In this document: piece after piece, positions 8,652-51,256 of the stretch
Layout: every line of letters starts with the position of its first letter
Numbering within the stretch: position 1 is the stretch's first letter
Origin: Carpediemonas membranifera BICM
Taxonomy: Eukaryota; Protista; Fornicata
Reading direction: 5' to 3'
Assembly: GCA_019828565.1 (NCBI GenBank)
Contig: JAHDYR010000005.1
Location: 1,315,937-1,379,936, forward strand
Length of the DNA: 64,000 nt
Translations under genes and position numbers: made by a program
The notes under the pieces: generated by a model
The model's database searches: none
Seen by the model: the letters and a program-made list of their open reading frames with translations, nothing else
Told to the model about the DNA's origin: nothing

Positions 8652-9866
8652 AGATACAATTGAATCTTTTCAAACATATTTTCATGAAGATAGATCCAAT
8701 GAAACTATGTACCATGAGCCCGATTGCTCAGTGATTATGTGATAATCCTGTGTGACCCAGGACAGCGTGCTCCTGGAATCAACAGGGCACAAAAACACCC
8801 TGCGTATTCCGGTAGCACACCGTTCTGACTCATACGTCCGTCTCTGGTTGTCGTATACAGGTCTATTTACGTGTTTGGCGATGGCGCTCCCTTAAATCTG
8901 CTTGAACGGCGTGTCGTGGCTGTCAGTATGCTGCAAATGTCGCAGCGAGAAAGGAGTCACCAATCGCGTTCAGCTTTCTTGTTTCTCGCCTGATACTGCT
9001 CGTAATATCGTTCAAGCGTGAATCTATGAAGTAATGGGACTGAATGGCCTCTATTGCGTCAATTTCTTGCGTAATCGTTGTTGAATGGCCTAGAATAGAT
9101 GTTGCAGCTGCTTCCAGCTCCTGTTGCATGCTAAATGCTGTGTTTTGGACAATTGGTCGTGTTCAGGCAGATTTTTTTCGTGCAAAGTGCAGGCTAATAC
9201 GCGCCCTTAAACTGTGGGATCAGCCGCTGGGTAAATATACTGAGAAAAAACCATATAGCTGAGTTCACTGTCTTGTGCTGAATACGGTGGCGCCATTTAT
9301 TTCTCTGAATCGCTAAGTTTTGTCAGCGTTGACCGCGCACGACCGGTCGTCCTTACGCGATGACACCCAGCCCATCTTGTAGGTCGGGTGGCCATACCTC
9401 GCGGCCTTGCTTGCTTTTCTTTGACGAGCAATATTCCCTGAGTAATAGCCTCTCCTTTTCTTCAATTCGACTCTAGCCAAGTCAAAAACAAGAAATCGAC
9501 CATATCTCAAAATCTAACAGGTAGATTCACTCTGAAAGTGATTATGCGCATATGTACCTCCTTTCAACTACTCACATAATCACTATCGTAGTGAATCTAC
9601 CTGTTAGATTTTCTGTTATTGTCCATTTTATCGTTTCGTCTTAACCTGCACGGCGAAATGCTCAAACCAGGCAAGGAGTCAGAGCCAGAGCTTCTTTCCA
9701 TGCTCTAAGTACATCATATGGACTCTCAAGAAGACCTTCGTTTATCTCTAAATAGCTTAAATTTAATGAATACTTCATTTCTGAGCAAGAAATTGTAGAT
9801 TATCTAGCGTTTTGAGGTCGAAGATAATCTAGGGTTTAGCAAAGATAATCTAGGGATGTTGACAGC

Positions 9867-12800: not shown

Positions 12801-13679
12801 TGGGTCGCCCACTACGGTATACCCCGTTTAATCCATTCAGACGGTGGGTCCCAATACCGAAATCAGCTCGTCGACACCATGGTGGAGAAGCTATCGATGA
12901 AACATCATATCGGTACGCCGTACCGACCGGCATCGCAAGGCGTCGTCGAACGTCAGAACGCGGAGCTGAAGAAGCATCTGAAGTGCCTGATGACGGAGTG
13001 CAAGACACGTGACTGGACGAAACTGATTCCACACGCTCAGTTCATCCTTAACTCGACGAAGAATAGTACCACGGGCATGTCCCCGTGGACGGTACTGTAC
13101 GACCAGGAGCAAGACTCGACTCTTGACGAGTTGAGTGACGATACAGTCTCGTTGGAGCTCTTTAGGCGTAGGATTGAAGTTAATCGTGTGGTTCAGCAAC
13201 AACTGTGTGATGGAGAGTCGCCAAGTCGCGATCACATCGAGCTACAAGACACCGCAGTCCTGGTGGCGTCGAACTCCGGTAGGAGATCTACTCTGCTCGG
13301 GCCGATGTGGTGCATAGGCCCAGACAAGTCCCCGAACGTTTATCGTGTCCGTAACCTGACGTCCGGGAAGACCCACAGCATCCACGCTGACAGGCTCAGG
13401 GTGTTCGAGACAAGCTTGACGCTCGATCAGCTGAAGCAGGTTGCTGCGGAGCGAGACGACGAATACGTGGTGGAGGAGATCAACGAGCACAAGTTCGAGG
13501 GACGGAAGCTGCTACTGCATGTTATTTGGGAAGGGTACCTTCCTGAGGAAGCCACGTGGGAGCCATTCACATTGGAGCTAGACAAACTCGAAGCACTTGA
13601 CAGATACTTGGAGAAAGTACCTCATTTGGCGAAGAAGTTGCCTGCACAGCGGAAGATGCTGCGGTTCAAAGCGAACTAA
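9867..13679 (+). CDS. Gag-Pol polyprotein (frameshift at C-run ~11835)
   Basis: CPYCNKVGHEDATKC knuckle, LLDTGAD protease, YVDD RT, QTDASD RNase H, GHLG..CPVC and D-D-E integrase, EYVVEEI..WEGY..ATWEP chromodomain. Confidence 0.93.
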
Positions 13680-26553: not shown

Positions 26554-28533
26554 ATGGAAAGAGAAGAAGCACAAGAAGATCAGCAAGACACCTCCACCCA
26601 GTGTATACAGGGGCTGACGGGCTCGATGAGCCGTCGGTGGATGAGGTGGCAGGCCCTCGGGGCCAGCAGGGAGGTGGTGCAGCTGTTACGAGAGGGAGTG
26701 AAGGTCACCCCGGCAGCACCGGCGCTCAATGCGCACCTCCAGAAGGAGACAGACACGATGAAGGCTCTACTAGAGGAGCTACTGCAACAGAAAGCAATAG
26801 AGAAGGGCGAGGCGACGACAATATGCCCCCTGTTCACATTAGAGAAGAAGATCGCAGGCAGCTACCGTCTGATACACGACCTGAGACCGGTCAATGCATA
26901 CCAAGAGGACCTAACATTCAGGCTGAAGGGCCTAGCAGAGATACAGCATGGAGTTCCGAGAAACTCGTGGGGAATAACATTGGATATGAAGTCCGGGTAC
27001 TACCAGCTCCTAGTGGAGGAGAACTCACGACAGGAACTCGGATTCTCGTTCGAGGGAGAACAATACAGATGGAGAGGACTCCCTTTCGGCCTCTCAACGG
27101 CGCCACGGCAGTTTCAGTCGGTTACGTCACAGATGGCGAAGATCCTGCGCTCACTTCTCGAAGGACTGATAATATACGTGTATCTGGACGATCTGCTCAT
27201 AATCAGTCGCTCGAGAGAGTCGTTGAACGCCCAGGTCCCACGGATCATAGAGATCTTGGACTCACTTGGAGTCGTCCTATCGAGAGAGAAGTGCCACTTG
27301 ACCCCGTCCCAGAGGGTAACTTACTTGGGCGTGATAGTCGACTTGCGCGAGATGACGATGTCGCTGCCAGAGGAGAAGAGGGCTCAATACAGCAGACTCA
27401 TAGCCAACCTGCAACTCAAGAGACACACAAAGCGGGACCTTCAGACCCTTCACGGAAAGCTCCTCTTCTGCCGGTTCGCACTGGGGACGCGGGCACTTGT
27501 CCGGCTCAGAGAGCTGCAGGTCAGGATCGCTGGCTGCGACGACCGAGTGCGGTACCCAAAGTCCAGCCTGCCCCAGGACCTACGAACGGATCTGCGGTGG
27601 TGGGCCAGACAGCTATCATCCGACCCGGCATGGTACTTCGGCCCAAGAGGCCAGGTACTTCGTATGGAGACCGACGCGCCGGACTATGCGTTCGGTGCGA
27701 CGCTGTTTGTCGAAGACACGTCCCTCAACATCCAGGGCAGGTTCTCAGAGGCACAATGCTCCAAGAGCATCAACGCGAAGGAGCTATGGGCAATGGAGGA
27801 AGGCCTGCGGAGATGGACGAGCGACATTCAGGAGAGGGACCTACTCATAGCCGGGGACAACACATCAGCGCTTTCATGGGTCCTGAAGTCAAGCACCAGA
27901 GCTCCCCGACACATCAGAAGGACGATTGTGGAGCTTCACGACTACTTGTTCGAGATTGGCTGCAGGATAAGAACCAAGCACATTCCAGGGAGATACAACA
28001 CGACTGCCGACGGGCTGTCCAGGTACCGGAAGCTGGACTGGAACTCACCCGCGGCGATGCTCCAGAGCGCGCTGGAACGATGGGGGTTTGAGTTTTTGAG
28101 TTTTTGAGTTTATTTTTTGATACAGTGCCGGGGTGTCCACCTCCAGGCACTGGCCACAACCCGAGCCAGACGAGCGGTGATCAGCCGATGGGGGTCAGTA
28201 GACCGATCACTCTTCTGCGCGGAGAGATTCCTGCCGGAGGACCACGACTTCCAGACGGACGCATTTACATGCAATTGGTCAGAGATGAGGTCATTGGCGG
28301 TCCCACCAGTCAGCCTACTGGACAATGTCATCGCCAGGGCGGAGGAGATCGCCACGTCAGACGAGACGCACCCCGCACTGCAGCAGAGAGGCCTATTAGT
28401 CATCGCACCACAACGCAGGACGAATGCCAGACTGGCAGCCATAGCACAGGACTGGTTCGAGGCAGCGTTCCCGATCAGCTGGTGGGCCCACACGGAGATA
28501 GAGAGCCTCTTCACAGGCAAGCAGAGAGCGCAT
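26554..28533 (+). CDS. E3 RT/RNase H plus methyltransferase-like domain (in-frame TGA at 28105)
   Basis: LDMKSGYYQ, LPFG, YLDD, ETDA, GDN, ADGLSR; DAFTCNW..AVPP. Confidence 0.88.
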
Positions 28534-31500
28534 ACTGTTAAAAACGGGGTTTCGATGCCTGAGGAAATCATGAGGAAGTCCGTTTTCACGAAAAAAAATG
28601 GTGAAAACATTAGATTCAGTGAAATCTTTTCACCATTTTCACAAGGCGCAAGAACACGAAAGAGATGGCACTGAACACCCCTGGATGTACAGGACATCAC
28701 TATACATGCTTTCCATGCATCTGTGAGCTTCTGCATTTTTCACACATTTTCACGAAATGCTTCTCTGCACTGAGACCACTGTTCGCCAAGAGAATCACTG
28801 ATGTTGTCGATAAATGCTATCCATAAGCTACTCCTGTCTTTATTTCCGCTGCTGCTTCCCTCGTAGCGACGCACAGGTAGCTGTCGCAAAATGCACTTTA
28901 AGACCGAATTTCGCACAGCTACCTGTGCATGGTGTTTGAGCTTGATTGAAAGGCACTGAACAATACAGGGCTACTCTGCAGGTAACAGTAAGCAATACTT
29001 GAGCGACTTTGGGCCTCGAAAGTGGTAGGATCTCATCAATGTTTATGACCCACCCTCGCATCATCCTGATCAGAACTTCACGCTTACTCACATGCTCAAA
29101 TACTATCCATATGTCCTCCCTGTCACCGATGTAGTCGTTGTCGACCGTGTCTCAGCCTGGATACTCCTCCTGTCGACCGCACTGTCGTCTCCAACGTCTG
29201 TTAGGTCGACCCTGGTGTCCAACTCAGTTATATTAGTCATCTAATGCAGGCTAAATTCGTCATACATGACCACGGAGTTGTTCAATGCGACTTCAAGTCT
29301 CACAATTTTCTTTCCGCTCTGAACAGAATGTATAGGTGACTGAATATGGCTCAGCGATGGCTAGAATCACAACTAATTGTCCTCTCTGACTCTTTGAAAG
29401 CTATTCGAGTGTGTCAGATCATTCTAATCTTTCCAGTCGCGCCATAATGTTAAACGGAAAGCCCAATCTCGCGATTGAATACGCATAGTCGACGCAGAGA
29501 AGCATTGTATAGCCAAGAACGCCTTCTTGAACATGACAGTATTGTTGACGTGACTCCAACATTAGTCCTCGGATTGATATTATGTCGAGACAGGAAGATG
29601 GGAGGGATGCACCACGACTCATGAGACTAAATGTCTCCCAAACCATCTCCTAAACCATTTGATGTAGTGTGATTGAACTTGTACTGTGTTTACCTTGAAG
29701 TGCGCCCCATGTATTTTTTTGTTTACGTATATCAACATAAATACGCCAATTTATTATCGTAAAATTGCTGGGCCCGGGTCAGCACAGTCTAAGGACCCGC
29801 CATATCGCTTTTCAGGTAGAAGTAGTCTGAACCCTAAATTTGCTTTACGTATATCTCGGTAAATAGACTCGAACGATATGTAAAAATCTTGGATCCGTCC
29901 TAACATATCAAATACTACACATATACCAAGTTTCAGCCAAATCCAAGCCGAGAAGATCACCCCCGTCAAGCCCATGGACAATGGTAGGTCAGAGTGGTTT
30001 TGGCGAAAATAACAGTGCATTGCTGTATTCCAAATGTATGACTTATAGTGCAATGCACTGTTATTTTCGCAGAGCCGAACTTGGAGGTGGCCAGAAACTG
30101 ACATCGCTGAAAAGCTCAGAGACGTCGTTATATCATCTATAACGGCATCTCTGAGCTTTTGGGCGCACGGTTTCATCCTGACGTGGAGATCGATGCTTGT
30201 GAAAATGAAGAATCGACTAGGAGAGCTCTACGCTTGCATGCAGCCTTCTATTAGGTTGTTGATGTTGGTTATATGCTTCTTTTCGTTCTCGATGCGTGTG
30301 GATGAGTATTCTGTTGCAAGATTCATTTTGATGGACTGATGTTGGTTATAGAGGATAAAGGCACCAGAATGGATCATATGCATGCTATAAACCCGTTCTG
30401 TGCCGTTGGAATAGCGTTATTCGATAGTCAGTAGCACTTGTTGTTCGTTTCACTCGTTGCAATCATTAAAGTGCACATGGAGAAATGATAAATCCTGGCC
30501 CATCTGTGCATGTGACAGCAACAAGGGGTCTCGGGGTAAGAGCAGGAACAAGAATTGGGAACAGCGAATTCCAGGCTGCCTGTCAACGAGCTAAGAACTG
30601 ACCCCAGCCAGGTGAAACAAATGGAACTTCTCAGAATGTCATAATATTCGCTGGTGTATGAGACTCACTGCCTCCCCTGCTCACCCCAATTAGCGATATA
30701 GGGACTTAGGGATGTGCAGTGCAATGACCGTGATAAATGCGGACGCAGAAGAGGCAGACCAGCACTTGTGGGGAACACTCACACCCCCGCTAAATCACAC
30801 GCAAGGTCACCGGAGAAGACACAAGTCTCATAGAGTCCACAGGTATGAACTTTTGAGGTCATAACTCTATGCTCTATGGCGGGTGCAATTGTGATAGGAA
30901 GTGCGTTGAATGCAAGTTGGAGGTCTAATGCGCTCTAGAGTCTTCTTCTGGTCATCATTCAGCGGATGAGGTAGCGCCCAGGCCGGGTGGAGAGTGGCGA
31001 AAATGGTCATTCACGAGCTTTGGGCAGTTACCCGCGTCTCTCGGCTGTGGGATAATGGGATACCGGACCTGTCCATGACCGAACACCAATCGACCTAAAA
31101 TTGTATTTAATGCGAAAAAATTTTTACGATGGTGTCTCTGACCTCCTGCCATGATACAGGTGCGAGAGGTACAAAGTTATTCTTTTTGATGTTTTTCTCC
31201 CGAGACCATTTTGTGCCACCAAGAAAAAAAAAGTGGCACAAATGAGTTTGAAGTTTGTGTGCTGCAGAACTACATTCTGAGGTGTTCAGGGGATGTGTAT
31301 AGTGTCTAATAAAGTACCCAGTGCAAACCACCAGCGGCATGATCATCACAATAGCGATTACGAACTGTGAAATTTCACATTTTCACATTTCACGGAGTTT
31401 TCACGAAACGCGATTACTGCGATTGCGACATCTTGGAGCTGAAAAGCGGCAGAAATGCCTGTAACAAGGATCTATAACATATCTTGAAGTTAGACTGCTG

Positions 31501-32287
31501 ATAGCTAGTCTCGTTGTCGAGTTCTGAGCTTGCACAAAAAAGTTGAATCTGAATTTCACGGTCAATATTGACCTAGATCGCGAAAGTGAAGGTGTAAGAA
31601 AAGGCTAACTCACCAACGAGAGCAGCTAGAGGAAAATGGTAAAGGGTTTTGCAATCTGCATCCCCTGAGGAGTTCAGTTTCACACAGATGAGGATTTGAG
31701 AAAGCTCCCCTTTCACAACGTCTTTGGGCACCTTCGACGGCATCGATAATGATGAAGCATACCATTAGCCCTTATAGGCTATGATACACATCTACTGTTG
31801 GCGAAATGTTCTGCAATGTTGTCATCGACGAGATATGGTACCACATTTTTTATATCTCAAGATTGATGAAGTGCCCCATCTAGCCGAGCATATCCGGGTG
31901 CTGTATGAAGGTCATATAGCACCCCAGTATGGTTGGTTAGTTGGGGCACTTCACCAATCCCGAGATCGAGTGATTCAATCAAAAGAACCCAGCGACTGAG
32001 ACATCGCTGAGAGCTGAAACCGAGAGAGGATGTATAAACAGTAGTACTGAGCTTGCTTACAGACCAGCTTGTCATTACGACCACTTTTCACCAACTACAT
32101 AAAATGCGTTTCCCTATTTACTCGCCGATGAGCAAAGTAATGCTCGACAAAGATGTAAGATATGCGTTATTCATCTATAAAGCACCTGCTGTAGTATTTA
32201 AATCGGCTTCAGGGGTTCTAGTTTCGGATATCGCCATTTTCACTTCCTCACGACTTCCTCAGGCATCGAAACCCCGTTTTTAACAGT
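28534..32287. mobile_element. Non-autonomous TIR DNA transposon (3.75 kb), 46-bp TIRs
   Basis: ACTGTTAAAAACGGGGTTTCGATGCCTGAGGAA... at both ends (2 mismatches); flanks CAT|...|ATG; AT-rich interior without long ORFs. Confidence 0.9.
28929..29350 (+). pseudogene. Decayed copy of the 3034 kinase
   Basis: Upstream region and start match 2976-3060; remnant HDHGVVQCDFKSHNF; many stops. Confidence 0.7.
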
Positions 32288-34492
32288 ATGCGACGTTCAT
32301 AGCCTACTGGATCCCGATCGCCACAGAGACCTCGTCCTCACAGCCGGGGGAGTCCTGCAACAGAGAGCGAGAGAACGTATCGCCGGCGGAAGACAGGAGG
32401 AGCACAGGTGGCGAAGAGGCCCCAGAGAGTTCGAGACAGGCCTCAGAGATCAGATACTCGGAGCAGCACTCATCAGGGATCGGGAGCGGAGCACCCGAGA
32501 GCGCATAGCCGTGGAGACGGCAAAGTACATCAGTTTTGCAGAACGTATGATGGAGGAAGAGGAGGAAGCTGGAGAGAACAGAGACACGGTAGGAGCAAGG
32601 GCAGCAACAGCCGTTTTCCTGGGCGAGATGGCACAACGCATTAGGGACGCAGACTGGAGAGCAGAAGTCGAAGAGATCGCACAGATGACACCTGACGACG
32701 ACTATCTCCTACACTACATGATACAAGAGATCCCATTCATTGCCAAGGACACATTCCTCGTCAAGGAAGCAAATATCAGGACTGGCCTAGAGTCGATCAA
32801 CCATGGTCTGGAGAGCTCACCCATCCACAGGGCTCTGATACGCGCGTGTGCAAGAATGGCCGGCAAATGCGAGCTGACTGTGGGTCGTAAGACCGGAAAG
32901 GCATACCCGGTGACAGTCGAGCAGCTGAAGAGAGCAGCAGCCGCGGCGCGCAAGACCAAGTCACCGGCGCTCACGCAGGCAGTAGCCTTCGGACTGACGT
33001 GCTTCTCCACCGTCAGCAGATCAGGGGAGATAATGAGCTTACTCACGACCGACGTTCGGCGGGTGAGAGAGGGCTACGAGATCACTATTCGAAGATCCAA
33101 GACCAGGGATGAGCCCATGGTGAAGCTGGTCCCACTACTAGCAGCAGGAGGCTTAAGCCCAGCCAGGTGGCTGAGACATGCAGTCAATTCTGGTACCTTT
33201 TCTGGAACAAATAGTTCCAGAATTGGTTCCAGAATGCCAGAAAAAATGGCATTTGCAAGAAAAACTAAACGCGTTCAAACAATTTAGCGACGCCTTGCCA
33301 TGGGATGTAAAGCAATATGCAACTAATACTGGGCCCAAGGAACGTTGATACGTACTGCTCTCATGAACTCACTCACTTTTCAGCAGAGCTCGACCAAAAA
33401 CTAACAGAGGCTTGCCCGAGGTGTGCTTAAGCCAGCTCCAACTCTCTCTCAGTCTGTGACAGCTCCCCCAAAAAATATTCTTGCTCAAAGTTGAGGTTTT
33501 CGGGAAATACTGCCAAAAAGTTTGCTTCTGCTCAAGAACGGGGGATGCGCGTTGGATACCGACACCGTTACGTAACAGTTTAACATTCATTATAACAGCG
33601 CTAGCCTCCAGATTTCCTTGCGCACGCCTTTATCTGGAGAAAATAGCACAAACTTTCGCAAGCAAACGCAAATCGATAGAAAAATATGTTTCATGTCCAA
33701 CGGAGCTAAAACTGAGCACAGTGTTATTCATCCTTCTATTCTACTAGTTTATCACTTCAAAAGGATCTGAACTTCAGTATTGATGGTGTTATAGGCACTG
33801 GTTCGGTTCGAGTCAAAACTGACTAAACTGTGACGACGGCTAGGTGTTGAAACATGCCATACTCACTCGTAGCGTGGCGCTTAATAGTGCCAGAATTGCT
33901 TCACTGCCACAAATCAATGGAGGTTCATGTTTGTGCATAAAGTACACAAACATGAGAAGACACGAATTCGTCACTGAATTAGAGACGATGCGCATAAGAA
34001 TCAAAGATTTGGTTCAAATAGAGGAATACTACCTCTTTGCAGACGATATCGCGAAGGAATACCTTGATGTTGCGTCCATATACCTGATGAAGGCAATCCT
34101 ACGTTCTCAGTGAGGCAACTAGCAAACATGAACCGTATCAAGAGACAAATATTGAAGCACTCCCCGTCCACATCATGTTTGATAAATTTTCTGGTGTCAT
34201 TCTGCTGTTAATATCAGACAAGCAAACAACGTAGTGATGCGGAGAGACCGCGTGCTGCTAGAATACGCAGGGCATGATGCACCTGTTGATACCAGGAGCG
34301 CTGTCTGGTATGATGATTAATTGCAACGAACGCGATCACCGGAAATTACCTTAACTTACCTTACCTGCAGGTACCATGGGTGTTCGTTTTCGTCTCCAAA
34401 CGCCATCGTGTAAGAGCATAAAGAGCATTTTCTGTTTACTGTGCCGTTGGGGATTGATGGCGCTGGCGTAGGGGTGCTGTGTGGGCGCCAGT

Positions 34493-38122: not shown

Positions 38123-38641
38123 ATGGCACCGACCAACAACGAGACACCTGAGCAACTGCAGGAGACCATTGAGCAACAACGGGACATCGAAGTAACTCCG
38201 AAGTCCAACGAGCAACTCGAGCAGGAGCTCAAGACCTTGCGGGGCCTTATTTCCAACCTTGAGGATGAACGGCGCTCCAACAACTGGACCCCTCCGCATT
38301 CGGACTCCATGCGAGGGGAATGGGCCTTCCTTCAGCGCCTCTACCGAGCCATTCGGTTTGACGCGTCCACCTCATCAACCGAGCTCCTCAACAGGCTCTA
38401 CTCTCGCCAGAGGGCCCTTGCCATCAAGGACCGCTACGGGTTCCACGTAGGCCTGGCGGTGGAAACCGCCACTGACGCTCTGCTCAGCGCTAAGCCAACT
38501 GCTACGGAGGCGATCATCGAGGAGAAGATCCTCTCCACCCTTTCCAAGATCCCCAGGCTTGGCGACCGCCAGCGTGAACGCGCTTCTTTTCAGCGCTCCC
38601 GTCGCCCACCGAAGCGAAGCGGCAAGCCCGCCAGAGATTAA
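38123..38641 (+). CDS. E4 Gag-like ORF1
   Basis: Position, coiled coil and basic tail. Confidence 0.68.
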   Translation: MAPTNNETPEQLQETIEQQRDIEVTPKSNEQLEQELKTLRGLISNLEDERRSNNWTPPHSDSMRGEWAFLQRLYRAIRFDASTSSTELLNRLYSRQRALAIKDRYGFHVGLAVETATDALLSAKPTATEAIIEEKILSTLSKIPRLGDRQRERASFQRSRRPPKRSGKPARD

Positions 38642-41633
38642 GAAAACATCCGAAAAGACTCTCTCTAGGCGATCGCTCTCACTCTCTTGCCTCTCCCCAC
38701 TCCTCCCCACCTCCCTCTCCGTCCCTACAAGGGCTGTCTCCCCCTCCGTCACCTCCTCCAGGGCCTCTTCAGCTTCCTCCGTCGCCTCCCGACAGTCAGC
38801 ACGCCAATCCGACCTTCCCGTCCATCACAGATCATCAGATCTGGTCAGACTGCGGGGCGCGCTCAGAAGTGGTGCGGTGGATTCGCGACGGCGTGCCCAT
38901 CAACATCCAGCAGGCAGCCTCAAAGCCCAGGCTTCCACCAGCACGGGCGTGCGACAAGCCGTTGTTGAGGAAGCACCTTGCGGACCTGCTCGCCTCGGGT
39001 GCGGCTGTACCTTGCCGCAGTCCGGCCCTCATCTCGCCAGTCTTCCTGGTACCGAAGGGCGAGACGGATACTCGCCTCATACACGACCTTCGCTCCCTCA
39101 ACAGCGTCACCAGCGAGGTCAGGTCGTTCCGTCTGCACGGGGTGAAGCGCCTGGTCACTCTCCTTGCCCCAGGGGACTACATGTGCCGTATAGACTTGAA
39201 GTCAGGGTACCAACAGGTAGGAATCAGACTGAAGGACCGCAAGCTGCTCGGCTTCATGATAGACGGGCGTCCATACGCTTTCCGCGTGCTTCCATTCGGC
39301 TGGTCAGCAGCACCGTTCCATTTCCAGATGATAATGCTAGAAGCTGCTCGCCTTGTTTCGGCCCGATGGAACGTCAAGATCGTCGTATATCTAGACGATT
39401 GGGCCTTTCTCGCGCCGAAAGACTACCTGACAAGCTGCATGCCGCAGATTGTGCGCTTTCTGCAAAATTTGGGCCTTATCCTGAACATCAAGAAATCCCA
39501 GCTGGACCCCGCCACTGTCACCGTCTTCCTAGGGATGCTGATCGACTCCGCGCGCAGAACGATACGTGTAGAGAGCAACAAGGCGCACAAGTACTCTTCG
39601 CGAATTACCGACGCCCTAGCCCGCGGCTCCTCAGCGGCCGAGTGGAAGAGACTGACAGGCAACCTGTCCTTCGCGTCATCAGCAGTCCCGGAAGGCCGCC
39701 TTTGGCTCAGGCATCTCCAGTCCTGGGAGCCCGTGGAGTCGCATCGAGTCAAGATCCCCGAGGAGCAGCGAAATGCGCTCGTCCATTGGCAGAAGCTTCT
39801 CAACAACCATACTCCACGTCCCCTGAAAGAGCTACTTTCCCTTTGGGGCACTTCCAGCAACCTAGACGTTACGATAGCCTCAGATGCTTCGAAATTCGCG
39901 GCAGGAGCCGTCATCAGCATCGATGGAGCGAAGAAGACGATCTCTGTACCAACAAGCACCAACAAGGACCGTCATATAACGGAGCTGGAGTTCTTCGCTG
40001 CAATGGAGGCCATCAACTTCGTGCTGCAGGAGACAGCGGTCTCGGACCGGGAGATCCGCGTATTCTCGGACTCTACGGCGGCTGTGGCGTGGCTCAACAA
40101 GCAGGGCTCGTCCCGATGCCCTCAAGCAGTCATTGCAGAGCTCCATCGCATCCTCCCGCGCCTGAGAGCCAGAGGACTGCTACTCAGGGCGGTGCACGTG
40201 AGCGGGCACCTGAATGTACGCCCGGATCGGCTGTCACGGCTCAGCAAGGTCGATTGGGGCACGCCACAGGTGGTCCTCGACCATATCATCGACTCTTGGG
40301 GGCCTCTACAGGTGGACGTCACAGCACAGGAAGGCAAGACGCTGCAGATCGGGGCAAACCCGCTCATGCCCCTTACTCGCGCGCAGGATGGTCTCTCATC
40401 CCGGTGGGAGGGCCTCAGAGTCTACGCAGCACCCCCGTGGGCCCTCATCCCGGCCACTCTATCGAAGCTGGCCTCCATCACCACCCCCTCACAGGACGGG
40501 GATCCCTCCAGCTGGTCATCAATGGCAGTAGTGCTCGTGCCGGACATAGTTTCGGCCGCGACCCTCGCCCTCAAGCGCTTAACGCCACACAGGCGGTACT
40601 TCCGCCTCCCTCCGGGCTCATTCGATGGGACAGAGCTACAGAGGACGGCACGGGCCGATGGCACGGTCAGACTGATGGCTCTCGCGTTCCGGCTGAAGCC
40701 TTCAACACCCTCGTTGGACACCCCAGGCTCGGAGGCCTCTCAGACTCCTACAAACGCCACATCGCGGGTACTCTGGTGACATTCGTCGACTTAGCCTCAA
40801 CAACACCCACGGTAGAGCAGGTAGCTACCTGGGTGCGGCAGCAGAGAGCCTCCTGCAGCGAGACCACGATCATGCGGAAGGCCCAGCTCATCATCACTCA
40901 TGGGCCAGACATCTTGGGCATCCAGCTCCCTGAACACTTCCGTCCGGCCATTAAGGAGGCCGCAAAGGGCGCAGCCGGCAAGCCGATCGGTCAGGCCCCA
41001 CCCATAAGACTGCCACTCTTCCACAAAGCACTGTCAGAGGCAGCCGCCTCCGGGCCCCTTCCGAAGACGTGGGTGCAAGCCTTCGCCTTCTCACTAGTGG
41101 CCTACTCGACGACCTCAAGACCAGGCGAGATCTTCGGATTGACAGGAGGAGACGTGAAACCCGCGGGCGCGCGCGGTATAACGATCCGTATTCAGGCGAC
41201 TAAGACCGGGAGGTCTAACGTGCTCAAGCTCGTACCGGACGTGCGGGGACATCCGCTTTCCCCTGCGCGGTGGCTGGCCCGTCACATTCAGAACCTCCCT
41301 CAATCTGATCTGAACGAATCTATCTGGCGTGCGCCGCGTGTCGATGGCTCGCTCTCATCCACGCCCATCTCCTTCGACCTACTTGGAGACTACATGGCTG
41401 GCGTCTTCCACAGAGTCAGCATCCGGGCTCACGGGCTTAGGCGCGGCTCAGCCGCCGACCTAGTCCTGGCTGGCGTTTCCCCTTACGTAGTCGCAGCCAA
41501 GGGTACATGGGCCGATATCAATTCGATGCTCCGCTATATCGACGACACGATGAGACTTGACCGCGCAACGTCGGCAAAGTGTTTCACGCCCCACATGGCA
41601 CAGGGGCTGCCGGACAAGATTGAGTTCGAGTGA
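38559..41633 (+). CDS. E4 long ORF ending in tyrosine recombinase (~40700-41633)
   Basis: SRPGE, ATKT, HGLRRG, GTW..LRY. Confidence 0.88.
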   Translation: MATASVNALLFSAPVAHRSEAASPPEIKKTSEKTLSRRSLSLSCLSPLLPTSLSVPTRAVSPSVTSSRASSASSVASRQSARQSDLPVHHRSSDLVRLRGALRSGAVDSRRRAHQHPAGSLKAQASTSTGVRQAVVEEAPCGPARLGCGCTLPQSGPHLASLPGTEGRDGYSPHTRPSLPQQRHQRGQVVPSARGEAPGHSPCPRGLHVPYRLEVRVPTGRNQTEGPQAARLHDRRASIRFPRASIRLVSSTVPFPDDNARSCSPCFGPMERQDRRISRRLGLSRAERLPDKLHAADCALSAKFGPYPEHQEIPAGPRHCHRLPRDADRLRAQNDTCREQQGAQVLFANYRRPSPRLLSGRVEETDRQPVLRVISSPGRPPLAQASPVLGARGVASSQDPRGAAKCARPLAEASQQPYSTSPERATFPLGHFQQPRRYDSLRCFEIRGRSRHQHRWSEEDDLCTNKHQQGPSYNGAGVLRCNGGHQLRAAGDSGLGPGDPRILGLYGGCGVAQQAGLVPMPSSSHCRAPSHPPAPESQRTATQGGARERAPECTPGSAVTAQQGRLGHATGGPRPYHRLLGASTGGRHSTGRQDAADRGKPAHAPYSRAGWSLIPVGGPQSLRSTPVGPHPGHSIEAGLHHHPLTGRGSLQLVINGSSARAGHSFGRDPRPQALNATQAVLPPPSGLIRWDRATEDGTGRWHGQTDGSRVPAEAFNTLVGHPRLGGLSDSYKRHIAGTLVTFVDLASTTPTVEQVATWVRQQRASCSETTIMRKAQLIITHGPDILGIQLPEHFRPAIKEAAKGAAGKPIGQAPPIRLPLFHKALSEAAASGPLPKTWVQAFAFSLVAYSTTSRPGEIFGLTGGDVKPAGARGITIRIQATKTGRSNVLKLVPDVRGHPLSPARWLARHIQNLPQSDLNESIWRAPRVDGSLSSTPISFDLLGDYMAGVFHRVSIRAHGLRRGSAADLVLAGVSPYVVAAKGTWADINSMLRYIDDTMRLDRATSAKCFTPHMAQGLPDKIEFE
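38869..40779 (+). CDS. E4 RT/RNase H/methyltransferase-like
   Basis: RIDLKSGYQQ, LPFGW, YLDD, ASDAS, FSDS, PDRLSR; QDGLSSRW..YAAPPW. Confidence 0.92.
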   Translation: MVRWIRDGVPINIQQAASKPRLPPARACDKPLLRKHLADLLASGAAVPCRSPALISPVFLVPKGETDTRLIHDLRSLNSVTSEVRSFRLHGVKRLVTLLAPGDYMCRIDLKSGYQQVGIRLKDRKLLGFMIDGRPYAFRVLPFGWSAAPFHFQMIMLEAARLVSARWNVKIVVYLDDWAFLAPKDYLTSCMPQIVRFLQNLGLILNIKKSQLDPATVTVFLGMLIDSARRTIRVESNKAHKYSSRITDALARGSSAAEWKRLTGNLSFASSAVPEGRLWLRHLQSWEPVESHRVKIPEEQRNALVHWQKLLNNHTPRPLKELLSLWGTSSNLDVTIASDASKFAAGAVISIDGAKKTISVPTSTNKDRHITELEFFAAMEAINFVLQETAVSDREIRVFSDSTAAVAWLNKQGSSRCPQAVIAELHRILPRLRARGLLLRAVHVSGHLNVRPDRLSRLSKVDWGTPQVVLDHIIDSWGPLQVDVTAQEGKTLQIGANPLMPLTRAQDGLSSRWEGLRVYAAPPWALIPATLSKLASITTPSQDGDPSSWSSMAVVLVPDIVSAATLALKRLTPHRRYFRLPPGSFDGTELQRTARADGTVRLMALAFRLKPSTPSLDTPGSEASQTPTNATSRVLW

Positions 41634-42587: not shown

Positions 42588-43723
42588 ATGCTATCGTCGT
42601 TAAACTGGGGGCCCCAGTTGGCAAAAGCAATCGAACTTAACAACCAAGCGGTTGTTGGGTCAATCTCACGACAGGCAGATGTTTGGATGCGGACGAATCC
42701 CCCTGCTGAAGTCGTAGCTGCGCTGAGAGGCATCGTTATCGATGCAAAAGACATTCTGGAGCCCATAGAGGGCACGTCAAGGTGTTCTGATCACCTAAAA
42801 GGAGAGATCGCGGAGCTGGAGGCGCTGGGCGCAATTCAACGTGTACACGAGCAACCTATAGCAGTGTGCCCTATCTTTCCACTCGTCAAGTCTGACGGAG
42901 TATCTTACAGGCTAATTCACGACTTAAGACCGGTGAATGAAGGTCTAGATGTCCCCAAGTTCTCCATGAGGGGGCTTGAGGAAGTCAAGGAGACGCTGCT
43001 CCCAGGAGACTATATGATCACACTGGACATGAGTAAGGGATATTATCAGCTCCTGTTGGAGCAGGCCAGTAGACAGATGGCCGGATTTCAGTTCGAGGGC
43101 CAGTATTTCACATTCAACGTGCTTCCCTTTGGCCTCGCGACGGCACCAAGAATTTTCCAAGCAGTATCCAAACATGCAGCCAAATTCGTGGCCAGACAAC
43201 TGGACCTGAGAATATGCGTCTACTTAGACGACTGGATAGTGATGGATCAAGACAAGGACAAGCTGGAGAGGCAATTGCCAGATTTGGTCAACATCGCAAC
43301 TTCGCTCGGTATTGTGCTCAACTGCGCGAAAACAACATGGATTCCAGCTCAGAGTGTAGAATATCTCGGTGCGATCGTCGATTCGTTAGAGATGGTGATC
43401 AAAATCACGGAAGAGAAGCGTCGCAAGTACAAACATCAAGTGGACGCCATTTTATCAGAGAGAAGGTTCCACATGAACGATCTACGACAGCTAATAGGAC
43501 GACTAACATTCACAAGAGTGTGCTGCGGCGCCATCGCACTTGTTCGGATTCGCGAGCTCGCCATCAACTTCGCGAGCCTGGTACGAGCAGTCGGAGCGAG
43601 CAGCCGTCGAAAGAGGTCGGACCTGAGCGCGGAAGCCCTGGCGGATCTGACCTGGTGGAGCAAGCGCCTGGAGACGCCCATGACACACCCAGTCTGCATG
43701 CCCCAGAACTTCTCGGTAAGCAT
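42588..43723 (+). pseudogene. E5 reverse transcriptase, truncated
   Basis: LDMSKGYYQ, LPFGL, YLDD, DLTWW. Confidence 0.9.
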
Positions 43724-44910
43724 GCTGTCTGGAGGGGGTGTATGGGTGGCAGTATACACCTACGGAACAGAGGGGCTCTGTCAAAAATGTCTGATTTAGA
43801 ACGTCTTACTCTGGCACCATGTAGCCCCCTTCCTGATGCACCTTTGAGCACGTGCTTGGCCTGCGATAATTACTTGGCGTCCCGTAAAGCCCAAAAATTA
43901 ATCAAATCGTCATCAAATGCGAATTAAATGATGCTGATATTGCTCATGAAACGACTCTGCTGATCAGCTGGGACTCTACGCGGCGATATGGCATGGCAAG
44001 TCTCTACACTTTGGAGACAATTCGGTCCCATGGTTCCTACCTTGACCCACGTTGTCTCGCGCGCGAGGTACTCACTGAAAGGATATATCAACACTGGGAG
44101 CAGAAAAAGGCACAGCGAGATGCAGGCGCTGTTGCTGAGCTCATTTTCCGGATAAGACCCGTTTTGTCACCTCAACCCATTCATATTGGCGGCTGTTGCT
44201 TCGTTTTGATCAAATCAAATGGAAACCAAACCGAGATCCGGGAAACGAGGATGATTGGGAGAGATAGACACATCATAAGGTCTTTAATATAGTAATGCAC
44301 CGTCAATGAGAAGTTCTTGGTTCCTGAAATGGATTATTGATTCCAAACGCTTTTCTTTGAGGATAACGCATTTATAGCGGTGATTTCCACACAATTCATC
44401 CAAATACTGATCAAACCATCAGAACTGCAAGTAAAATTGGTATAGATCGTTTATCCACGGAGATAGCAAATGCTCCCAATCCCAGCTTACAAGAAAAAGT
44501 TAAGGGGCTGTATTGGGGCTTGCACTGATATCTCTATATATGCCGACACAGTCACTGGGCTGTCCATCACTGAACAGCTCTAGCCCAATACAAAAACATG
44601 AGGGCTCGAAGTTTTGGCCTTCTCGGAAAAGGGTGGCGGAACGCTGCAACACTACAATGCTAATGGACAGAGGGGAGGAAGTGGTCCACAGGTATGTCCT
44701 ATGGGTCGCTTCTTCCCCTCTGTCCATTTTTACACGATATCGATTTGCCGGATTTGACACATGTTGTGCGATCTTTAACTCCTCGCGTCCAAGCACCTCT
44801 CCCAAACGATCTGCAAGATCGACCAGCCCTGGATCACTTGGGCCTGCCTCCGTGCCCGGCCTGTTGCGATCAATCATGTTGATTAATTGCAACGAACGCG
44901 ATCACCGGAA

Positions 44911-47627
44911 ATGGCGACTTTGGCTTCCGAGACGGAGATTATTAATACAGTGCATGGCATTGTCATGTATTCAGGCGCATGCTCGCTCAAGGTTCTCTTG
45001 GCGGTGCTGGAAGCGAAGATTGTTACCAAATGTACAGTTTCCGGCCGTCCGCGTCTCGATGAGGCGTCTGTTCAAAGATTTTTGGACGTTTCGTTGGCTG
45101 TTTCTCGGAATCCGCGCTTCATTCTTACTCCTGCTCTTGAAACCGCTTTGGAGGCGAGAAATTTTCGTGGCGTCCAAAGATTTCTAAGCACAAAAATGTT
45201 GACCTCACTCTTGCAGCTTTCATCCCCAGTTCCCTCCAGTCAACGACAGTCACAGAGTTCTTGGAGGCATTTGCTGCGATAGCTTCGGTCGACTTAGGCG
45301 CCAACAAGTATGACCGCCTGCGTCGCGTTTATAATCACCTTTCACAGGCGATGAACGTCGCCGATCGAGTTCCACAACTCCCACCGGCGAAGCCCCTCAA
45401 GGATATTGGCCCGAGTCTTCTTGATTACGGCCCACTGAACCGAAATCTCCGCGATCCAGCCTTGGTCACTGATATGGCAGCATACACACCGGCCAGCCTT
45501 ATCTTTGACGGATTTAGCGGCTTGTCTATGGTCAACCCTGATACTGCTGCGTTTTCTGGTCTCCCTGTGACTGTTGCGTCAGACAACAGCATAAAAATCG
45601 CTTGTCAGCAGGAGCAGACGACTTCCATCCTCAGCCTCTTCCGCACTGACGAATATTTGGTCTCTGAGCATGTTTTCCACCACGAGAAGTTCTCAGTAGG
45701 GGGTTCAGGTGTCCTTATTCTGTCGCCATACGAGGGTCAAATTGACGCAGTCTGCCAGCGTCTCTCAGCGAACGACGTCGTGTTCCGCCGGTATCATAAC
45801 AGTCGCCATGAGTATGCATCTAGCCTGACATACAACCTTCGGAAATGGATCATATTCGCTCTCGACAATCCCGCTTCAGTCGAACGTGCCAAAAACAGCT
45901 TCACTGTCGCGAAGACGGCAATGCGAAACTCGGTAGATTCCTCTTCTGCGAGTGTGAAGACGATCCAGCTATTTGTCTGGATTGACGGTTACCGCAAGGC
46001 CTCCACGGCGGTCAAGGTCAGACTCTATGACTCCTCCGGCAAAGTTCTCCCGCAGCTGATCACTCCTCCCTATACGATTTATCAGTACAGTGGAGATGAG
46101 GGTGACCTCCACAAACACTCAGCCGTCATCGAGAATCTCATCCGCCAGGCGACGACAATCTCTTACGATAAGTGTTTCATGATGCCCAACTGTACAGTTA
46201 AGGTGGAACTTACTGCGATACTGGCAGACCACAAGGCCATGCAGATCATCTGCGGGGTGAGCAAGGGCGGATACAGCAGGTCGCCGTTCTCGGCAATTGA
46301 ATTTCCCCTTCTGCCAAGAAACCCGTACGATGCGTTCTGTAGCCGGCTGACTCTGGGACAGACCGTGCAGGGCCGAACCACCTTACTCAATGGTGAACAC
46401 CAGACGACCCTGTTTCATAGTCTGGATAATGGCCAGGTCCAGACACCACTATTCTGCCACTACGATAACGACACGAGACAATTTTACGTCAATTCTCCCA
46501 GTCTGAGTCAAGTCATCGTCTGCCCTCCAGTGATGCACGTCAGCCACGAGCTCATGAGGCAGATGTGGGTTCTACTGGAACGATTCACTCCAGCTGTTCG
46601 CGGCAACCACCTGCAGACCCATATCGATGCTGCCTTCACCCGCACGACGGGATGCAACGAACAGAGTTGGAATAGACACCGTCTTGCCGTTCTGTCCAAC
46701 GATTACCTCTACAGCTTTGATGAAACTCTCCGCCCCTTCATTCTGATCATCAGTCATCTCCAGGCTCTGCTCTACTCCAAGGCGCCCGTGACGGATTATA
46801 CTGTTCGCAAGCTGTTTTTCATGGGGATGGTTACTTTCTACTTCTTCCATGTCTCGACCCTGGTCTTACCGACTGCCCAGCAGCCTCGGAACCGCAACAA
46901 CCATGACGCCCAGGAACCTGAAGCCGGTAGAGATGTTCGGCAGAAGCCCTACCTCCGCTACGACACGGGCGATTTTGCAGGGTCGTTATACATGCACGAC
47001 CTGATTGCAGTTTTGCCAGAAGTGTGCCACAGGCTGCGCATTCCACTCTTCAATCTCCTGGAGGAGTACTTCGAGCGAGACTTTTTGCTCGACGCAATTG
47101 TTCACAGAGAGAAGCATCGTGTGAGAACGCTGCTGTACAACTGTCAGAAGCTGCAGGTCAGGCGGTTGACAGCCTTTATCACTGGCGTTCGGACGTCTCG
47201 AAAGCACACAGACGTTGCGCCACTGCAGACTCACGTCAACCGGATTCGTCTTCACAAATGTCTGTGGGATGCCAGTTCTGCATTCAGCTGGCGAAACCGC
47301 ATGTTTGGGACTTCCAAAGAGGTGAATGACAATTTCAAAGGTTCCGTTCAGGACACTCTAGCAGCTTTACGTGACGGTCTTCAGCAGCATCTCAACAATG
47401 CCGTCCCTGACTCGTTTATAACTGATGGTGACTATCTCACATGCGTTGTAGGAGACCACCATGATGAGAACTCTACTTGTACAGTCTGTATCTGCCAACG
47501 TCCATCTGATCCTGGGGTGCGGCCCGACGCACGGCAGTCACGCCAACAGCAAGCCGACCTTGATCAACGTCGCGCGTTGATTTCAGACGATGAGATCCAA
47601 TTTCAGCAGCGGAGGGCACGGATGTAG
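44911..47627 (+). CDS. RAG1/Transib-like DDE transposase, copy 2 (main ORF 45261-47627; possible 5' exon with intron 45167-45216)
   Basis: WIDG, LADH, PPVMHV, YMHDLIAVLPEVCHRLRIPLFNLLEEYFE. A 50-nt GT..TTGCAG intron would join the ATG at 44911 in frame. Confidence 0.72.
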
Positions 47628-48413: not shown

Positions 48414-48948
48414 CCGTCGGTTGTCCATAGCACGTAGCAGTCAACTACCTGCCAATTGTATCAGTCTCCAGCCATAAGTTCAAAGCATGGCCACCTATAC
48501 GGCAGCCAGAGCCGATCCACATTTGTGGATTCAGCTAAACCGGGCATGCCACAACACTGCATCTAGTCCCAATACACGCGTGTATATACGCTAGAGAGGG
48601 CCGCATTTGGCCTTAGGAAACGGCTATGGGGTACAGCTTTTTAATCCTTAAAGTGCGTTGCATCGATGCAACAAGCAACTACCTCAAACGTGCGAGCTAC
48701 CATCGATTTCTTGGCACCAACACGACACATTGAAGTCAGATAACTACGCGGTCAGCTATGAGCACACTAAACAACATCACTGTGCCAAAATACATCTTTG
48801 GACATCAGGCATGCCACAGAACATGTAAGCAACATCAAACCCGCCTAATTCCAGCTCATTTAGTCAATAAACACATCAACACATTCCAATATCTCCTCAT
48901 GATGCGCCAGATGGCAAGTGACTCTGGCCTGCTCCTCCGGTGAATGAC
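48414..48948 (+). repeat. ~535-bp direct repeat, second copy 50604-51141
   Basis: Near-identical; partial inverted copy at ~36895-37055. Confidence 0.93.
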
Positions 48949-49236
48949 AATGCAGAAGTCTACACATGAAGGTTGGCCTACGAGTCGGAAAGAAAGACTT
49001 GGCAACCTATATCCATGCTTCCTTCGACTTCGAGGCTTCCCTCTTCGATCGATGGTGTGCCTATGTTTTGGCGACATTCTCGAATGAGTTTAGCATATGG
49101 TTCAAGGCTCTGAGTGAAGATCGCATTAGTGACTCCGAGTTCCACAAATACATCCTCTTTCGCATGAACAACAATTCGGAGAATGAGAGTGTTCCTCCGC
49201 ACTGCACTCTTATCTTTAAATTTGACTGATTCTTCT

Positions 49237-50523
49237 TTACTCCAACTGTGCTCGCTTCCCATCATCATCGCCTGACTCCGTCACGTTGCCTTTCCGCTTG
49301 CCAGACCCACTTCTCTCTTCACATTCCGTCTCGGGCGATGGCTTGACATACGTCAGGGAGTTCGTCTCCACAGAAAGCGCAAACATTTGCTCCATCATCG
49401 ATAGCCTGTCTGTGTCAGTTACTCCATCCTTCAGTTCCTGCATGAGTGCTGCACGCGTTCCTCCCTCGCTGTTATATGCCATGAAGAAGCTCTCCAAGAC
49501 CATGTTTGCCAACTCTCTCGCATCACCCGTGTCCCTGGGAATCAAACCAGCCTCCAGGAACTTGCCGAAGTCGGCGTATGTCAGCAACATCATGCCGATG
49601 ATGATGTGGCTTCGTTCTATGCTCTTCACACCCATATTCGTGGCATGTTTCTGTACATCATTATAGAAGCTTGACTTGTTAGTCCTGCGAGTGCGGGTTG
49701 TGCAGTAACTCTGGTTACGGCTGATGAACTCGCTGCGTTGTTTTTCGGCCATCTTAGTCAGTTCAGCTGTTGGAGCAATTATCGGGTCCACAGTAAACTT
49801 ATCCTTCGCTATATAGTCATACAGAGTTAGGTTATACGCAACGTAAATACGCATCACCGTGAGGTTCTCTTCAGAGAGGCTGTCGGCAATATGGTTGAGT
49901 GACGCCAGGGAAGTTTGCATGTCCCCCAGCCGATTCACACGCTCGACTGACCTCTCTAGTGAAGGCAATCTAGCTTTGATCGTCTTGAGATACTTCTGGA
50001 GGAACGCACTTCTCTCCACCGGCAAGGCAGCATCATCGGGATGGACAATCTCTGACGGAAAAGTTAGCTTCTGGGTCTTCCTTGCCGAAAGTAGCCGACG
50101 CTTGTGGGCCTTCTTTGTCTTATGCGAGCTTGATGCGCTGGTTACGGGTGGCTCATCCTCTTCTCCGTCGTGCACTTCGACAATCTTCATTGTTTCCTCG
50201 CGATCGCCCGAATACAATGCATCCATCTTCTCTAGCGCTTCTGGATCCTCGTTGAGCACTTCCCGCTCCAACAAAAGGAAGGACCGCAAGAACTCGGTGT
50301 GAATAGTCTTGGAGTATGCCCTTCCGTGGCGCTCGCCTCTTATGGATTGCGAGGATCCCCGAAGAACATCGACTGCGGCGAGCATTGTCATGAGATACCG
50401 CAAATGCTCAGAGGATGAGTGCTTTCCTGTGAAGACATCCATTTCGTCCATAAACTGCGGCAAAACAAGGTGAAGCATGCTTACGACCGCGTTGATGTCC
50501 ATACAGGTGTCAGACTGACCCAC
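49237..50523 (-). CDS. Hypothetical protein (428 aa)
   Basis: Long ORF with protein-like composition; no recognised motif. Confidence 0.6.
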   Translation of the reverse strand: MGQSDTCMDINAVVSMLHLVLPQFMDEMDVFTGKHSSSEHLRYLMTMLAAVDVLRGSSQSIRGERHGRAYSKTIHTEFLRSFLLLEREVLNEDPEALEKMDALYSGDREETMKIVEVHDGEEDEPPVTSASSSHKTKKAHKRRLLSARKTQKLTFPSEIVHPDDAALPVERSAFLQKYLKTIKARLPSLERSVERVNRLGDMQTSLASLNHIADSLSEENLTVMRIYVAYNLTLYDYIAKDKFTVDPIIAPTAELTKMAEKQRSEFISRNQSYCTTRTRRTNKSSFYNDVQKHATNMGVKSIERSHIIIGMMLLTYADFGKFLEAGLIPRDTGDARELANMVLESFFMAYNSEGGTRAALMQELKDGVTDTDRLSMMEQMFALSVETNSLTYVKPSPETECEERSGSGKRKGNVTESGDDDGKRAQLE

Positions 50524-51256
50524 GATTATTGTCTAAGCTCATGCACAGCCCCAAGCCCCAGGGAGCGCCTGTCTGTTGCGAAGCGAGCCCTGCCAGTGAA
50601 TGGCCGTCGGTTGTCCATATGAGCACGTACCAGTCAACTACCTGCCAATTGTATCAGTCTCCAGCCATAAGTCCAAAGCATGGCCACCTATACGGCAGCC
50701 AGAGCCGATCCACATTTGTGGATTCAGCTAAACCGGGCATGCCACAACACTGCATCTAGTCCCAATACACGCGTGTATATACGCTAGAGAGGGCCGCATT
50801 TGGCCTTAGGAAACGGCTATGGGGTACAGCTTTTTAATCCTTAAAGTGCGTTGCATCGATGCAACAAGCAACTACCTCAAACGTGCGAGCTACCATCGAT
50901 TTCTTGGCACCAACACGACACATTGAAGTCAGATAACTACGCGGTCAGCTATGAGCACACTAAACAACATCACTGTGCCAAAATACATCTTTGGACATCA
51001 GGCATGCCACAGAACATGTAAGCAACATCAAACCCGCCTAATTCCAGCTCATTTAGTCAATAAACACATCAACACATTCCAATATCTCCTCATGATGCGC
51101 CAGATGGCAAGTGACTCTGGCCTGCTCCTCCGGTGAATGACGATCGACAACGACAATCTTAGCCCGCAAGTGACCTAATTGATGTGGTATCCCGCTGTAC
51201 GTCCAAATGTCTGCTGCAGGTCATGAACCGCTGGCTACACGGGCATATCCAAATCT

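Follow-up and report, generated by a model that had tools for sequence, protein, structure and literature searches.

A putative RAG1-fold DDE transposase of Carpediemonas membranifera without the canonical zinc ligands

Can a transposase built like RAG1 do without the structural zinc site of that protein? The question is raised by an open reading frame (ORF) of 788 codons in the free-living metamonad Carpediemonas membranifera BICM, at positions 45261 to 47627 (+ strand) of a 64,000-nucleotide stretch of contig JAHDYR010000005.1 (assembly GCA_019828565.1, positions 1,315,937 to 1,379,936). This whole stretch is referred to here as the window, and positions are counted from its first letter. 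The initial annotation described the ORF (copy 1) and a divergent second copy (copy 2, which lies on the opposite strand) as RAG1/Transib-like transposases that had lost their zinc ligands. In mouse RAG1, these ligands are C727, C730, H937, and H942 (PMC4914335). In the CMCT transposon lineages surveyed by Kojima in 2025 (EnSpm/CACTA, Mirage, Chapaev, and Transib, as well as Plavaka, ESTA, and Lanisha), a C(2)C and an H(3-4)H motif are described as common to every lineage, with five conserved residues, two Cys and three His (PMC12730594). Our analyses indicate that copy 1 probably encodes a DDE transposase with a RAG1 fold from which the canonical zinc ligands are gone, carried by a CMCT-type cut-and-paste transposon that was probably active in recent times. 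The element would be a C. membranifera DNA transposon of 8.6 to 11 kb when complete, and its transposase would follow the RAG1 core in domain order and fold, including a large, mostly helical insertion between the second catalytic Asp and the Glu that would match the ZnC2/ZnH2 module of RAG1. One zinc ion pins that module in RAG1; in copy 1 the corresponding site would be absent.

Copy 1 contains the whole RAG1-like core (residues 1 to 643) and a C-terminal extension, and its product is at least 99% identical to the hypothetical protein J8273_4482 of C. membranifera (NCBI). Taken as a gene unit, as it had been in the initial annotation, it is a real ORF but only the larger part of a 905-amino-acid frame, which is open throughout in a copy on contig C1 (L005). 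The start ATG of that copy is equivalent to window position 44911, and alignment with it places the ~100 N-terminal codons of the transposase at 44911 to 45191 (+), split from the remainder by an A-run that is 1 nucleotide shorter in the window (~45192). The difference may reflect either a genuine frameshift or an assembly error at a homopolymer.

The residues expected of a DDE transposase are in place. The first catalytic Asp, D242 (45984 to 45986, +), lies in a WIDG motif that starts at 45978; it stands at the end of strand beta-1 in the structural model (residues 231 to 244) and is shared by 30 of the 32 aligned rows. The second, D323 of the motif ADH (46227 to 46229, +), equivalent to RAG1 D708, is nearly invariant and follows directly upon model strand 311 to 322. 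In the motif EEYFE (E601-E602-Y-F-E605; 47061 to 47075, +), E601 and E605 are invariant and a helix extends from residue 602; from the model, E605 is likely the catalytic Glu, equivalent to RAG1 E962. Between them, the PPVMH motif (46524 to 46538, +) is conserved clade-wide, with P422, P423, and H426 nearly invariant, and its H426 probably corresponds to the third His in the CMCT set of conserved residues. Across the 32 relatives as a whole, D242, D323, E601, E605, and H426 show no or almost no variation.

For copy 1, the AlphaFold2 model computed from the 32-row alignment had a predicted local distance difference test score (pLDDT) of 80 and a predicted template modelling score (pTM) of 0.81. 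Foldseek searches against the PDB returned 45 matches with E values from 1.7e-8 to 9e-5, all of them to RAG1, BbRAGL, or HzTransib; the next match had an E value of 1e-2. The likeness to RAG1 that had been read from the motifs is thus borne out by the fold: only RAG1-family chains fell below an E value of 1e-4, and the model has the element order of an RNase H domain (beta1-beta2-beta3-alpha-beta4-alpha), with one catalytic Asp at the end of beta1, the other at that of beta4, and the EEYFE glutamates at the start of helix 602 to 618. A second, Foldseek-independent aligner was run over 48,161 representative chains, of which just 7 reached a Z score of at least 8. With the full model, RAG1 chains scored 13.8, 13.7, and 13.7 over 431 to 439 aligned residues and a further RAG1 chain 11.6; the values for the other proteins were 12.8 for the P element transposase (334 residues), 12.6 for BbRAGL, and 9.9 for HzTransib. 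ISCth4 came next at 8.0. Model residues 1 to 643 aligned to residues 463 to 1005 of mouse RAG1 with a Z score of 14.5, over 434 to 455 residues.

Because the P element transposase scored close to RAG1 on the full model, residues 308 to 622, which span the insertion domain, were folded alone (pLDDT 79). RAG1 matched this model with Z scores of 12.0 to 13.0 (250 of the 315 residues aligned) and BbRAGL with 12.2; the P element transposase followed at 8.6, HzTransib at 6.3, and all others at 5.8 or less. In Foldseek, RAG chains were likewise the top matches for the insertion domain but weak ones, with E values from 0.011. Residues 1 to 315 of this model corresponded to mouse RAG1 693 to 978/979. 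With 308 placed on 693 and 622 on 978/979, D323 falls on D708 and E605 on 961/962, i.e., on E962. The stretch HKTLAHVPE...E959..E962, which we take to be that of RAG1, is consistent with this mapping and is offered as a lead only. Outside the RNase H domain, on its N-terminal side, residues ~105 to 180 of copy 1 (45573 to 45800) gave ACT/ferredoxin-like alpha-beta matches with Z scores of 6 to 7.6, which may reflect a mere common small fold.

The residues at the zinc positions of this fold are different from those of RAG1. In copy 1, the place of the CxxC ligands (RAG1 C727/C730) is taken by S341-P-F-S344 (46281 to 46292, +), as established by alignment with relatives. The two serines lie 18 and 21 residues after the second Asp, compared with 19 and 22 for the Cys pair in RAG1 and in the metagenomic relative P0024. 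They align with RCSxC in the metagenomic relatives P0022, P0024, P0033, and P0040, found with HMMER on ENA contigs; in six relatives of intermediate state, the aligned residues are CPF[ST]. Where the H(3-4)H ligands would stand, copy 1 has H579-D-L-I-A583-V584 (46995 to 47012, +), aligned to WHSMLH of P0024: ahead of the Glu, P0024 reads W-H-S-M-L-H-L-V-P and copy 1 M-H579-D-L-I-A583-V-L-P, so that only the first His survives, with Ala or Val in place of the second. The model is confident here (pLDDT 80 to 94). With S341, S344, H579, and A583/V584 at the ligand positions, the canonical zinc site cannot form. Alignment with the CxxC-bearing relatives confirms SPFS in place of CxxC for both copies, as had been claimed, and the second His is indeed missing from both, replaced by Ala or Val in copy 1 and by Ala in copy 2. 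The account of the ligands given in the initial annotation holds for the Cys pair and the second His, but not in its placing of the retained His in a motif written H..LPE: the retained residue is H579, seven residues before the proline of LPE. Copy 2 has a Leu at the H579 position and keeps none of the four canonical ligands.

Relatives show a graded series of states at positions 341/344 and 579/583. C/C and H/H occur together in P0024, the one row with CxxC that extends into the His region. Six relatives (P0047 and P0007 to P0011, including P0010 from Carpediemonas) have C/[S,T] and H/[A,M,V]. Copy 1 has S/S and H/A, the L007 and L010 subfamilies have S/S and N/S, and copy 2 has S/S and L/A, its 579/583 residues being read from a separate alignment and translation since its row is gapped there in the A2 alignment. 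Because relatives retain CxxC and HxxxH, the state of the two window copies is to be regarded as a loss. In a tree computed without the ligand columns, the core family was supported (100/99), and the copy-1 and copy-2 clades fell in separate branches, each adjoining Cys-His members, which indicates that the first Cys was lost two or three times. The tree was rooted on the C/C group, an assumption for which the presence of C2H2 in the wider clade is the justification. On this sequence evidence, the second Cys and the second His would have been lost before the core family diversified, and we infer a stepwise course from C2H2 to one Cys plus one His and then to Ser/His or none, with ligand loss probably repeated across branches. 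The single loss giving rise to one zinc-free lineage, as originally proposed, does not agree with this tree, in which the first Cys disappears in several branches.

The term zinc-free is itself too strong, as other potential metal ligands remain: an invariant [H/C]xC...CxC set and the invariant C465. The former lies in the C-terminal extension (47253 to 47495, +), outside the RAG1-matching part, as H665-x-C667 and C743-x-C745 in copy 1, and no core-family row that extends this far lacks either pair; the pairs may form a candidate separate zinc site, possibly zinc-binding. C465 is part of RTTGCNEQ (46641 to 46664, +), a core-family signature that is absent from the CxxC-bearing relatives. That this motif is common to both copies and family specific had been recognized from the window alone and stands in the wider alignment.

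These residues bear on an alternative that we consider unlikely, although it is the strongest of the rivals, namely, that the zinc site, instead of disappearing, was relocated or rebuilt, with C465, H426/H429 (PPVMHxSH), and H579 as metal holders. C465 and H426 are invariant, H429 is present in most core members, and RTxGCxEQ is confined to members without the full C2H2 set, all of which speaks for a rebuilt site. As a doubtful variant of the same explanation, the surviving Cys-His pair of the intermediates may hold a metal together with water or a carboxylate. Cys341 and His579 occur together in six rows, are both missing from six, and are separated in two that have His alone and in none that has Cys alone, although the rows counted are not phylogenetically independent; the co-occurrence suggests joint working and hints that the pair still cooperates where retained. 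Against a rebuilt site, proteins of the L007/L010 and copy-2 types have neither C341 nor H579 and yet exist as many intact, near-identical copies; moreover, the loop with C465 is modelled at low confidence (residues 461 to 463), and the co-occurrence counts are subject to the dependence just mentioned. We retain as the preferred reading that the canonical site was lost.

If the site was lost, did the enzyme remain functional? The C. membranifera genome contains at least 57 to 71 matches to the family, in several subfamilies, and six copies that are 99 to 100% identical to copy 1. Between subfamilies, synonymous sites are saturated, and 34 to 57% of residues and all motifs are kept; within subfamilies, the ratio of nonsynonymous to synonymous substitution rates (dN/dS) is ~0.15 to 0.7, from few changes. 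Since several subfamilies comprise many near-identical intact copies and the catalytic residues are invariant, the enzyme would appear to be active without zinc at the canonical site. Alternatively, the ligand-less proteins could be inactive relics moved in trans by a relative with a complete zinc site. The state of the window copies lends itself to this view, as copy 2 is frameshifted yet present in three identical copies and copy 1 has its N-terminal frameshift. However, no Carpediemonas protein with CxxC plus HxxxH was among the matches of an exhaustive search, the four CxxC sequences being from ENA metagenomes, and several ligand-less subfamilies have long open frames and invariant catalytic residues in spite of saturated synonymous divergence, the pattern expected from selection on the transposase itself. 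We consider the relic explanation highly improbable. As to the broader proposition, that a RAG1-fold lineage has stayed active after the stepwise dismantling of the structural zinc site common to the reported CMCT lineages, with living intermediates (C2H2, Cys-His, Ser-His, and none), we regard the chances as about even.

Copy 2 is damaged. Its N-terminal 641 codons (5425 to 7350, - strand) contain WVDG, ADH, SPFS (at 6006), PPIMH (5769), and RTTGCNEQ (5604). Its C-terminal part (4804 to 5533, -), with LPE...EESFE (EESFE at 5227, in a different frame), is distributed over two other frames (5533 to 5114, then 5118 to 4804), as found with tblastn using P0043 and by three-frame translation. Compared with intact 852-amino-acid copies (e.g., C7:423113), its frame is shifted twice, around 5525 and around 5116. 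The motifs follow the same order in the two copies, as initially described, and the proteins are paralogs by BLASTP (26% identity over 360 residues, E value of 1e-30). The truncated copy 2 frame of 642 amino acids is found in three identical genomic copies (contigs C6, C19, and C30), which suggests that broken copy 2 was itself duplicated or mobilized.

HMMER, run exhaustively over 1.84 billion representatives, recovered 17 proteins at an E value of 1e-10 or lower. Their sources were Carpediemonas, the assembly GCA_002919055.1 of NCBI, and a small number of metagenome contigs; another 24 metagenomic matches, all of them weak, spanned the interval from the first Asp to the second. A word-based protein search yielded two proteins only. 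Outside the Carpediemonas genome, the transposase family is rare. No Pfam transposase family matched copy 1 or any of the 32 aligned members, even at an E value of 10, and the Pfam models of CMCT families, including RAG1 (PF12940) and its sub-domain models, detected 0 of the 32. Neither phmmer nor three family profiles run with HMMER against PDB sequences found a RAG1 or Transib chain; the sole matches in the PDB sequences, to release factors and Pumilio, were dismissed as chance. The Pfam models of RAG1 (PF12940) and Transposase_21 also found nothing in the whole genome, a result of little weight because the controls were equally silent. In the ESM Atlas, the nearest named clusters were Transposase_21, Plavaka, and RAG1, in agreement with a broad CMCT placement.

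The mobile element itself was delimited by comparison of its genomic copies. The copy-1 element begins with a 22-bp terminal inverted repeat, CATGCTGTCTGGAGGGGGTGTA (43721 to 43742, +), which is found at the start of all six genomic copies. Two complete copies of 11.0 and 8.6 kb on contig C18 (L033 to L036) have right ends that are a perfect 22-bp inverse of CATGCTGTCTGGAGGGGGTGTA; complete copies have the termini CATGCTGT...ACAGCATG and start with CATGCTG. For the copy-1 element in the window, no inverted match for a right end was found anywhere in the window, and the element is rearranged after 48961/51141, with a 2.19-kb partial tandem repeat followed by other repeats (48414 to 48961 being repeated as 50604 to 51141). 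This 2.19-kb unit (48414 to 51141) forms 1.25 tandem copies at the right side of the element. It contains an ORF of 428 amino acids without a Pfam match (49237 to 50523, -), and other genomic copies have the unit in varying number or carry insertions at the 48961/48968 junction. A second, 3.76-kb element in the window (28531 to 32290) has the termini CATACTG...CAGTATG, as in L041, an 11,629-bp element (L041:2171-13799) of GCA_002919055.1 (PPCM01000946.1) that carries the transposase P0009 and lies in a Ty3 pol gene. The L041 element is alike in design; its inverted repeat is perfect over 36 bp, and besides the transposase it carries six genes that match nothing in Pfam.

Insertion was accompanied by a 2-bp target duplication, matched at 4 of 4 insertions (chance probability, ~1.5e-5): AA and TC for the two C18 copies, CG for the window element at 28531 to 32290, and GC for the L041 element. 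The duplicated dinucleotides vary in sequence and lie outside the CATRCTG ends; they are not an AT inside CATG. In L041, excision of the element plus 2 bp restores a 939-amino-acid Ty3 pol frame, and excision with 0 or 4 bp fails to do so. This frame test also fits a 2-bp duplication inside CATG, since the two cases are equivalent modulo 3; that the duplication is outside the ends follows from the four matching flank pairs. The left end of the copy-1 element, at 43721, is inside an ORF (42588 to 43799) with a reverse-transcriptase-like YLDD motif, so that the transposon appears to be inserted in a retroelement. Reverse transcriptase and recombinase-like ORFs (38559 to 41633) precede the YLDD ORF, and elsewhere in the window a Ty3/gypsy pol with protease, reverse transcriptase, RNase H, integrase, and chromodomain is recognized by Pfam (9856 to 13679).

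Where, then, does the family belong? The description as RAG1/Transib-like is justified by the RAG1-core fold and the insertion domain but not by any sequence link to RAG1 or Transib specifically. Given the missing sequence link, the weaker match of HzTransib, and the 2-bp duplication, the CMCT clade at large (CACTA/EnSpm, Mirage, Chapaev, Transib, and RAG1) is a safer address than Transib proper. With CMCT transposases the family shares the D242/D323/E605 triad and the His after PPxM, and its 5'-CA...TG-3' termini and 2-bp duplication fall within the CA..TG ends and 2- to 5-bp duplications of that clade (PMC12730594); C(2)C and H(3)H are also found among its more distant relatives. It departs from the clade in that C(2)C is absent from both copies (SPFS), being full in the four metagenomic relatives and half present in the six others, and in that H(3-4)H is likewise absent from both, HSMLH being found only in P0024. 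Mirage elements have a target duplication of 2 bp (Repbase). To the RAG1 core and BbRAGL (4WWX, 6CIJ, 6DBI, and 6B40), copy 1 corresponds in domain order and fold from the dimerization/DNA-binding domain to the C-terminal domain, in the architecture of the insertion module that separates the second Asp from the Glu, and in the positions of the triad. It is different in its low identity (~10 to 12%), in having Ser, Ser, and Ala/Val for C727, C730, and H942, and in its extra C-terminal extension with [H/C]xC...CxC. Unlike Transib and RAG elements, with their canonical 5-bp duplication, the family generates 2 bp, and its heptamer CAT[GA]CTG has only CA and TG in common with CACAGTG/CACAATG; a 2026 preprint describes Transib duplications of 3 bp and of TA, and variation in the heptamer as well. 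HzTransib of Helicoverpa zea (6PQN and 6PQR) shares the general fold (Z scores of 8.4 to 9.9 on the full model, Foldseek E value of 7e-5), although not at the level of RAG1, with a root mean square deviation of 7 to 10 A and the insertion domain Z score of 6.3.

The Drosophila P element transposase (6P5A and 6PE2) also has an RNase H-like core with a large insertion and reached Z scores of 12.8 to 13.0 on the full model, but with 326 to 334 residues aligned, compared with 431 to 455 for RAG1, an insertion domain score of 8.6, and a Foldseek E value of 1.4. In P elements, the insertion is a GTP-binding domain and duplications measure 8 bp. That the RAG1 likeness is generic, an RNase H fold with a helical insertion in the style of P element or hAT in which the serines never were zinc ligands, is the least probable of the explanations considered: the P element score, the lower HzTransib score, and the missing sequence-level link speak for it, but they are outweighed by the preference of the isolated insertion domain for RAG1 (12 to 13, against 8.6), the restriction of Foldseek E values below 1e-4 to RAG-family chains, the HMMER relatives in which CxxC follows the second Asp at exactly the RAG1 spacing and HxxxH precedes the Glu, the CA..TG ends with a 2-bp duplication rather than the 8 bp of P and hAT, and the named Atlas neighbours.

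Several points nevertheless weigh against a RAG1-fold CMCT transposase that is active without its canonical zinc ligands. No sequence-level method connects the family with RAG1, Transib, or CACTA; with the full model, the P element transposase and RAG1 differ by no more than ~1 Z unit; and the residue mapping to RAG1 was read from the end points of the aligned ranges, not from coordinates. AlphaFold models no metals, so that a confident fold is uninformative on zinc. Activity was judged only from the identity among copies and from frames and ends that are intact, and copy 1 of the window has an N-terminal frameshift and no right end.

In vertebrate RAG1, the recombinase that builds antibody genes, zinc joins the two halves of the insertion domain, and mutations of the zinc site in immunodeficiency have been classed as protein destabilizing (PMC4914335). 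A family with the same fold and triad and with near-identical intact copies, but without the ligands, suggests that the zinc site is possibly dispensable. It constitutes an exception to the C(2)C/H(3-4)H rule of the CMCT survey and extends RAG1-fold transposons to a free-living metamonad, in which, as the family is invisible to Pfam, genome annotations call its genes hypothetical proteins. Its graded natural ligand variants provide material to ask how the domain is stabilized without zinc and, if the lineage did stay active after ligand loss, would be a natural series from which to learn what the zinc does.

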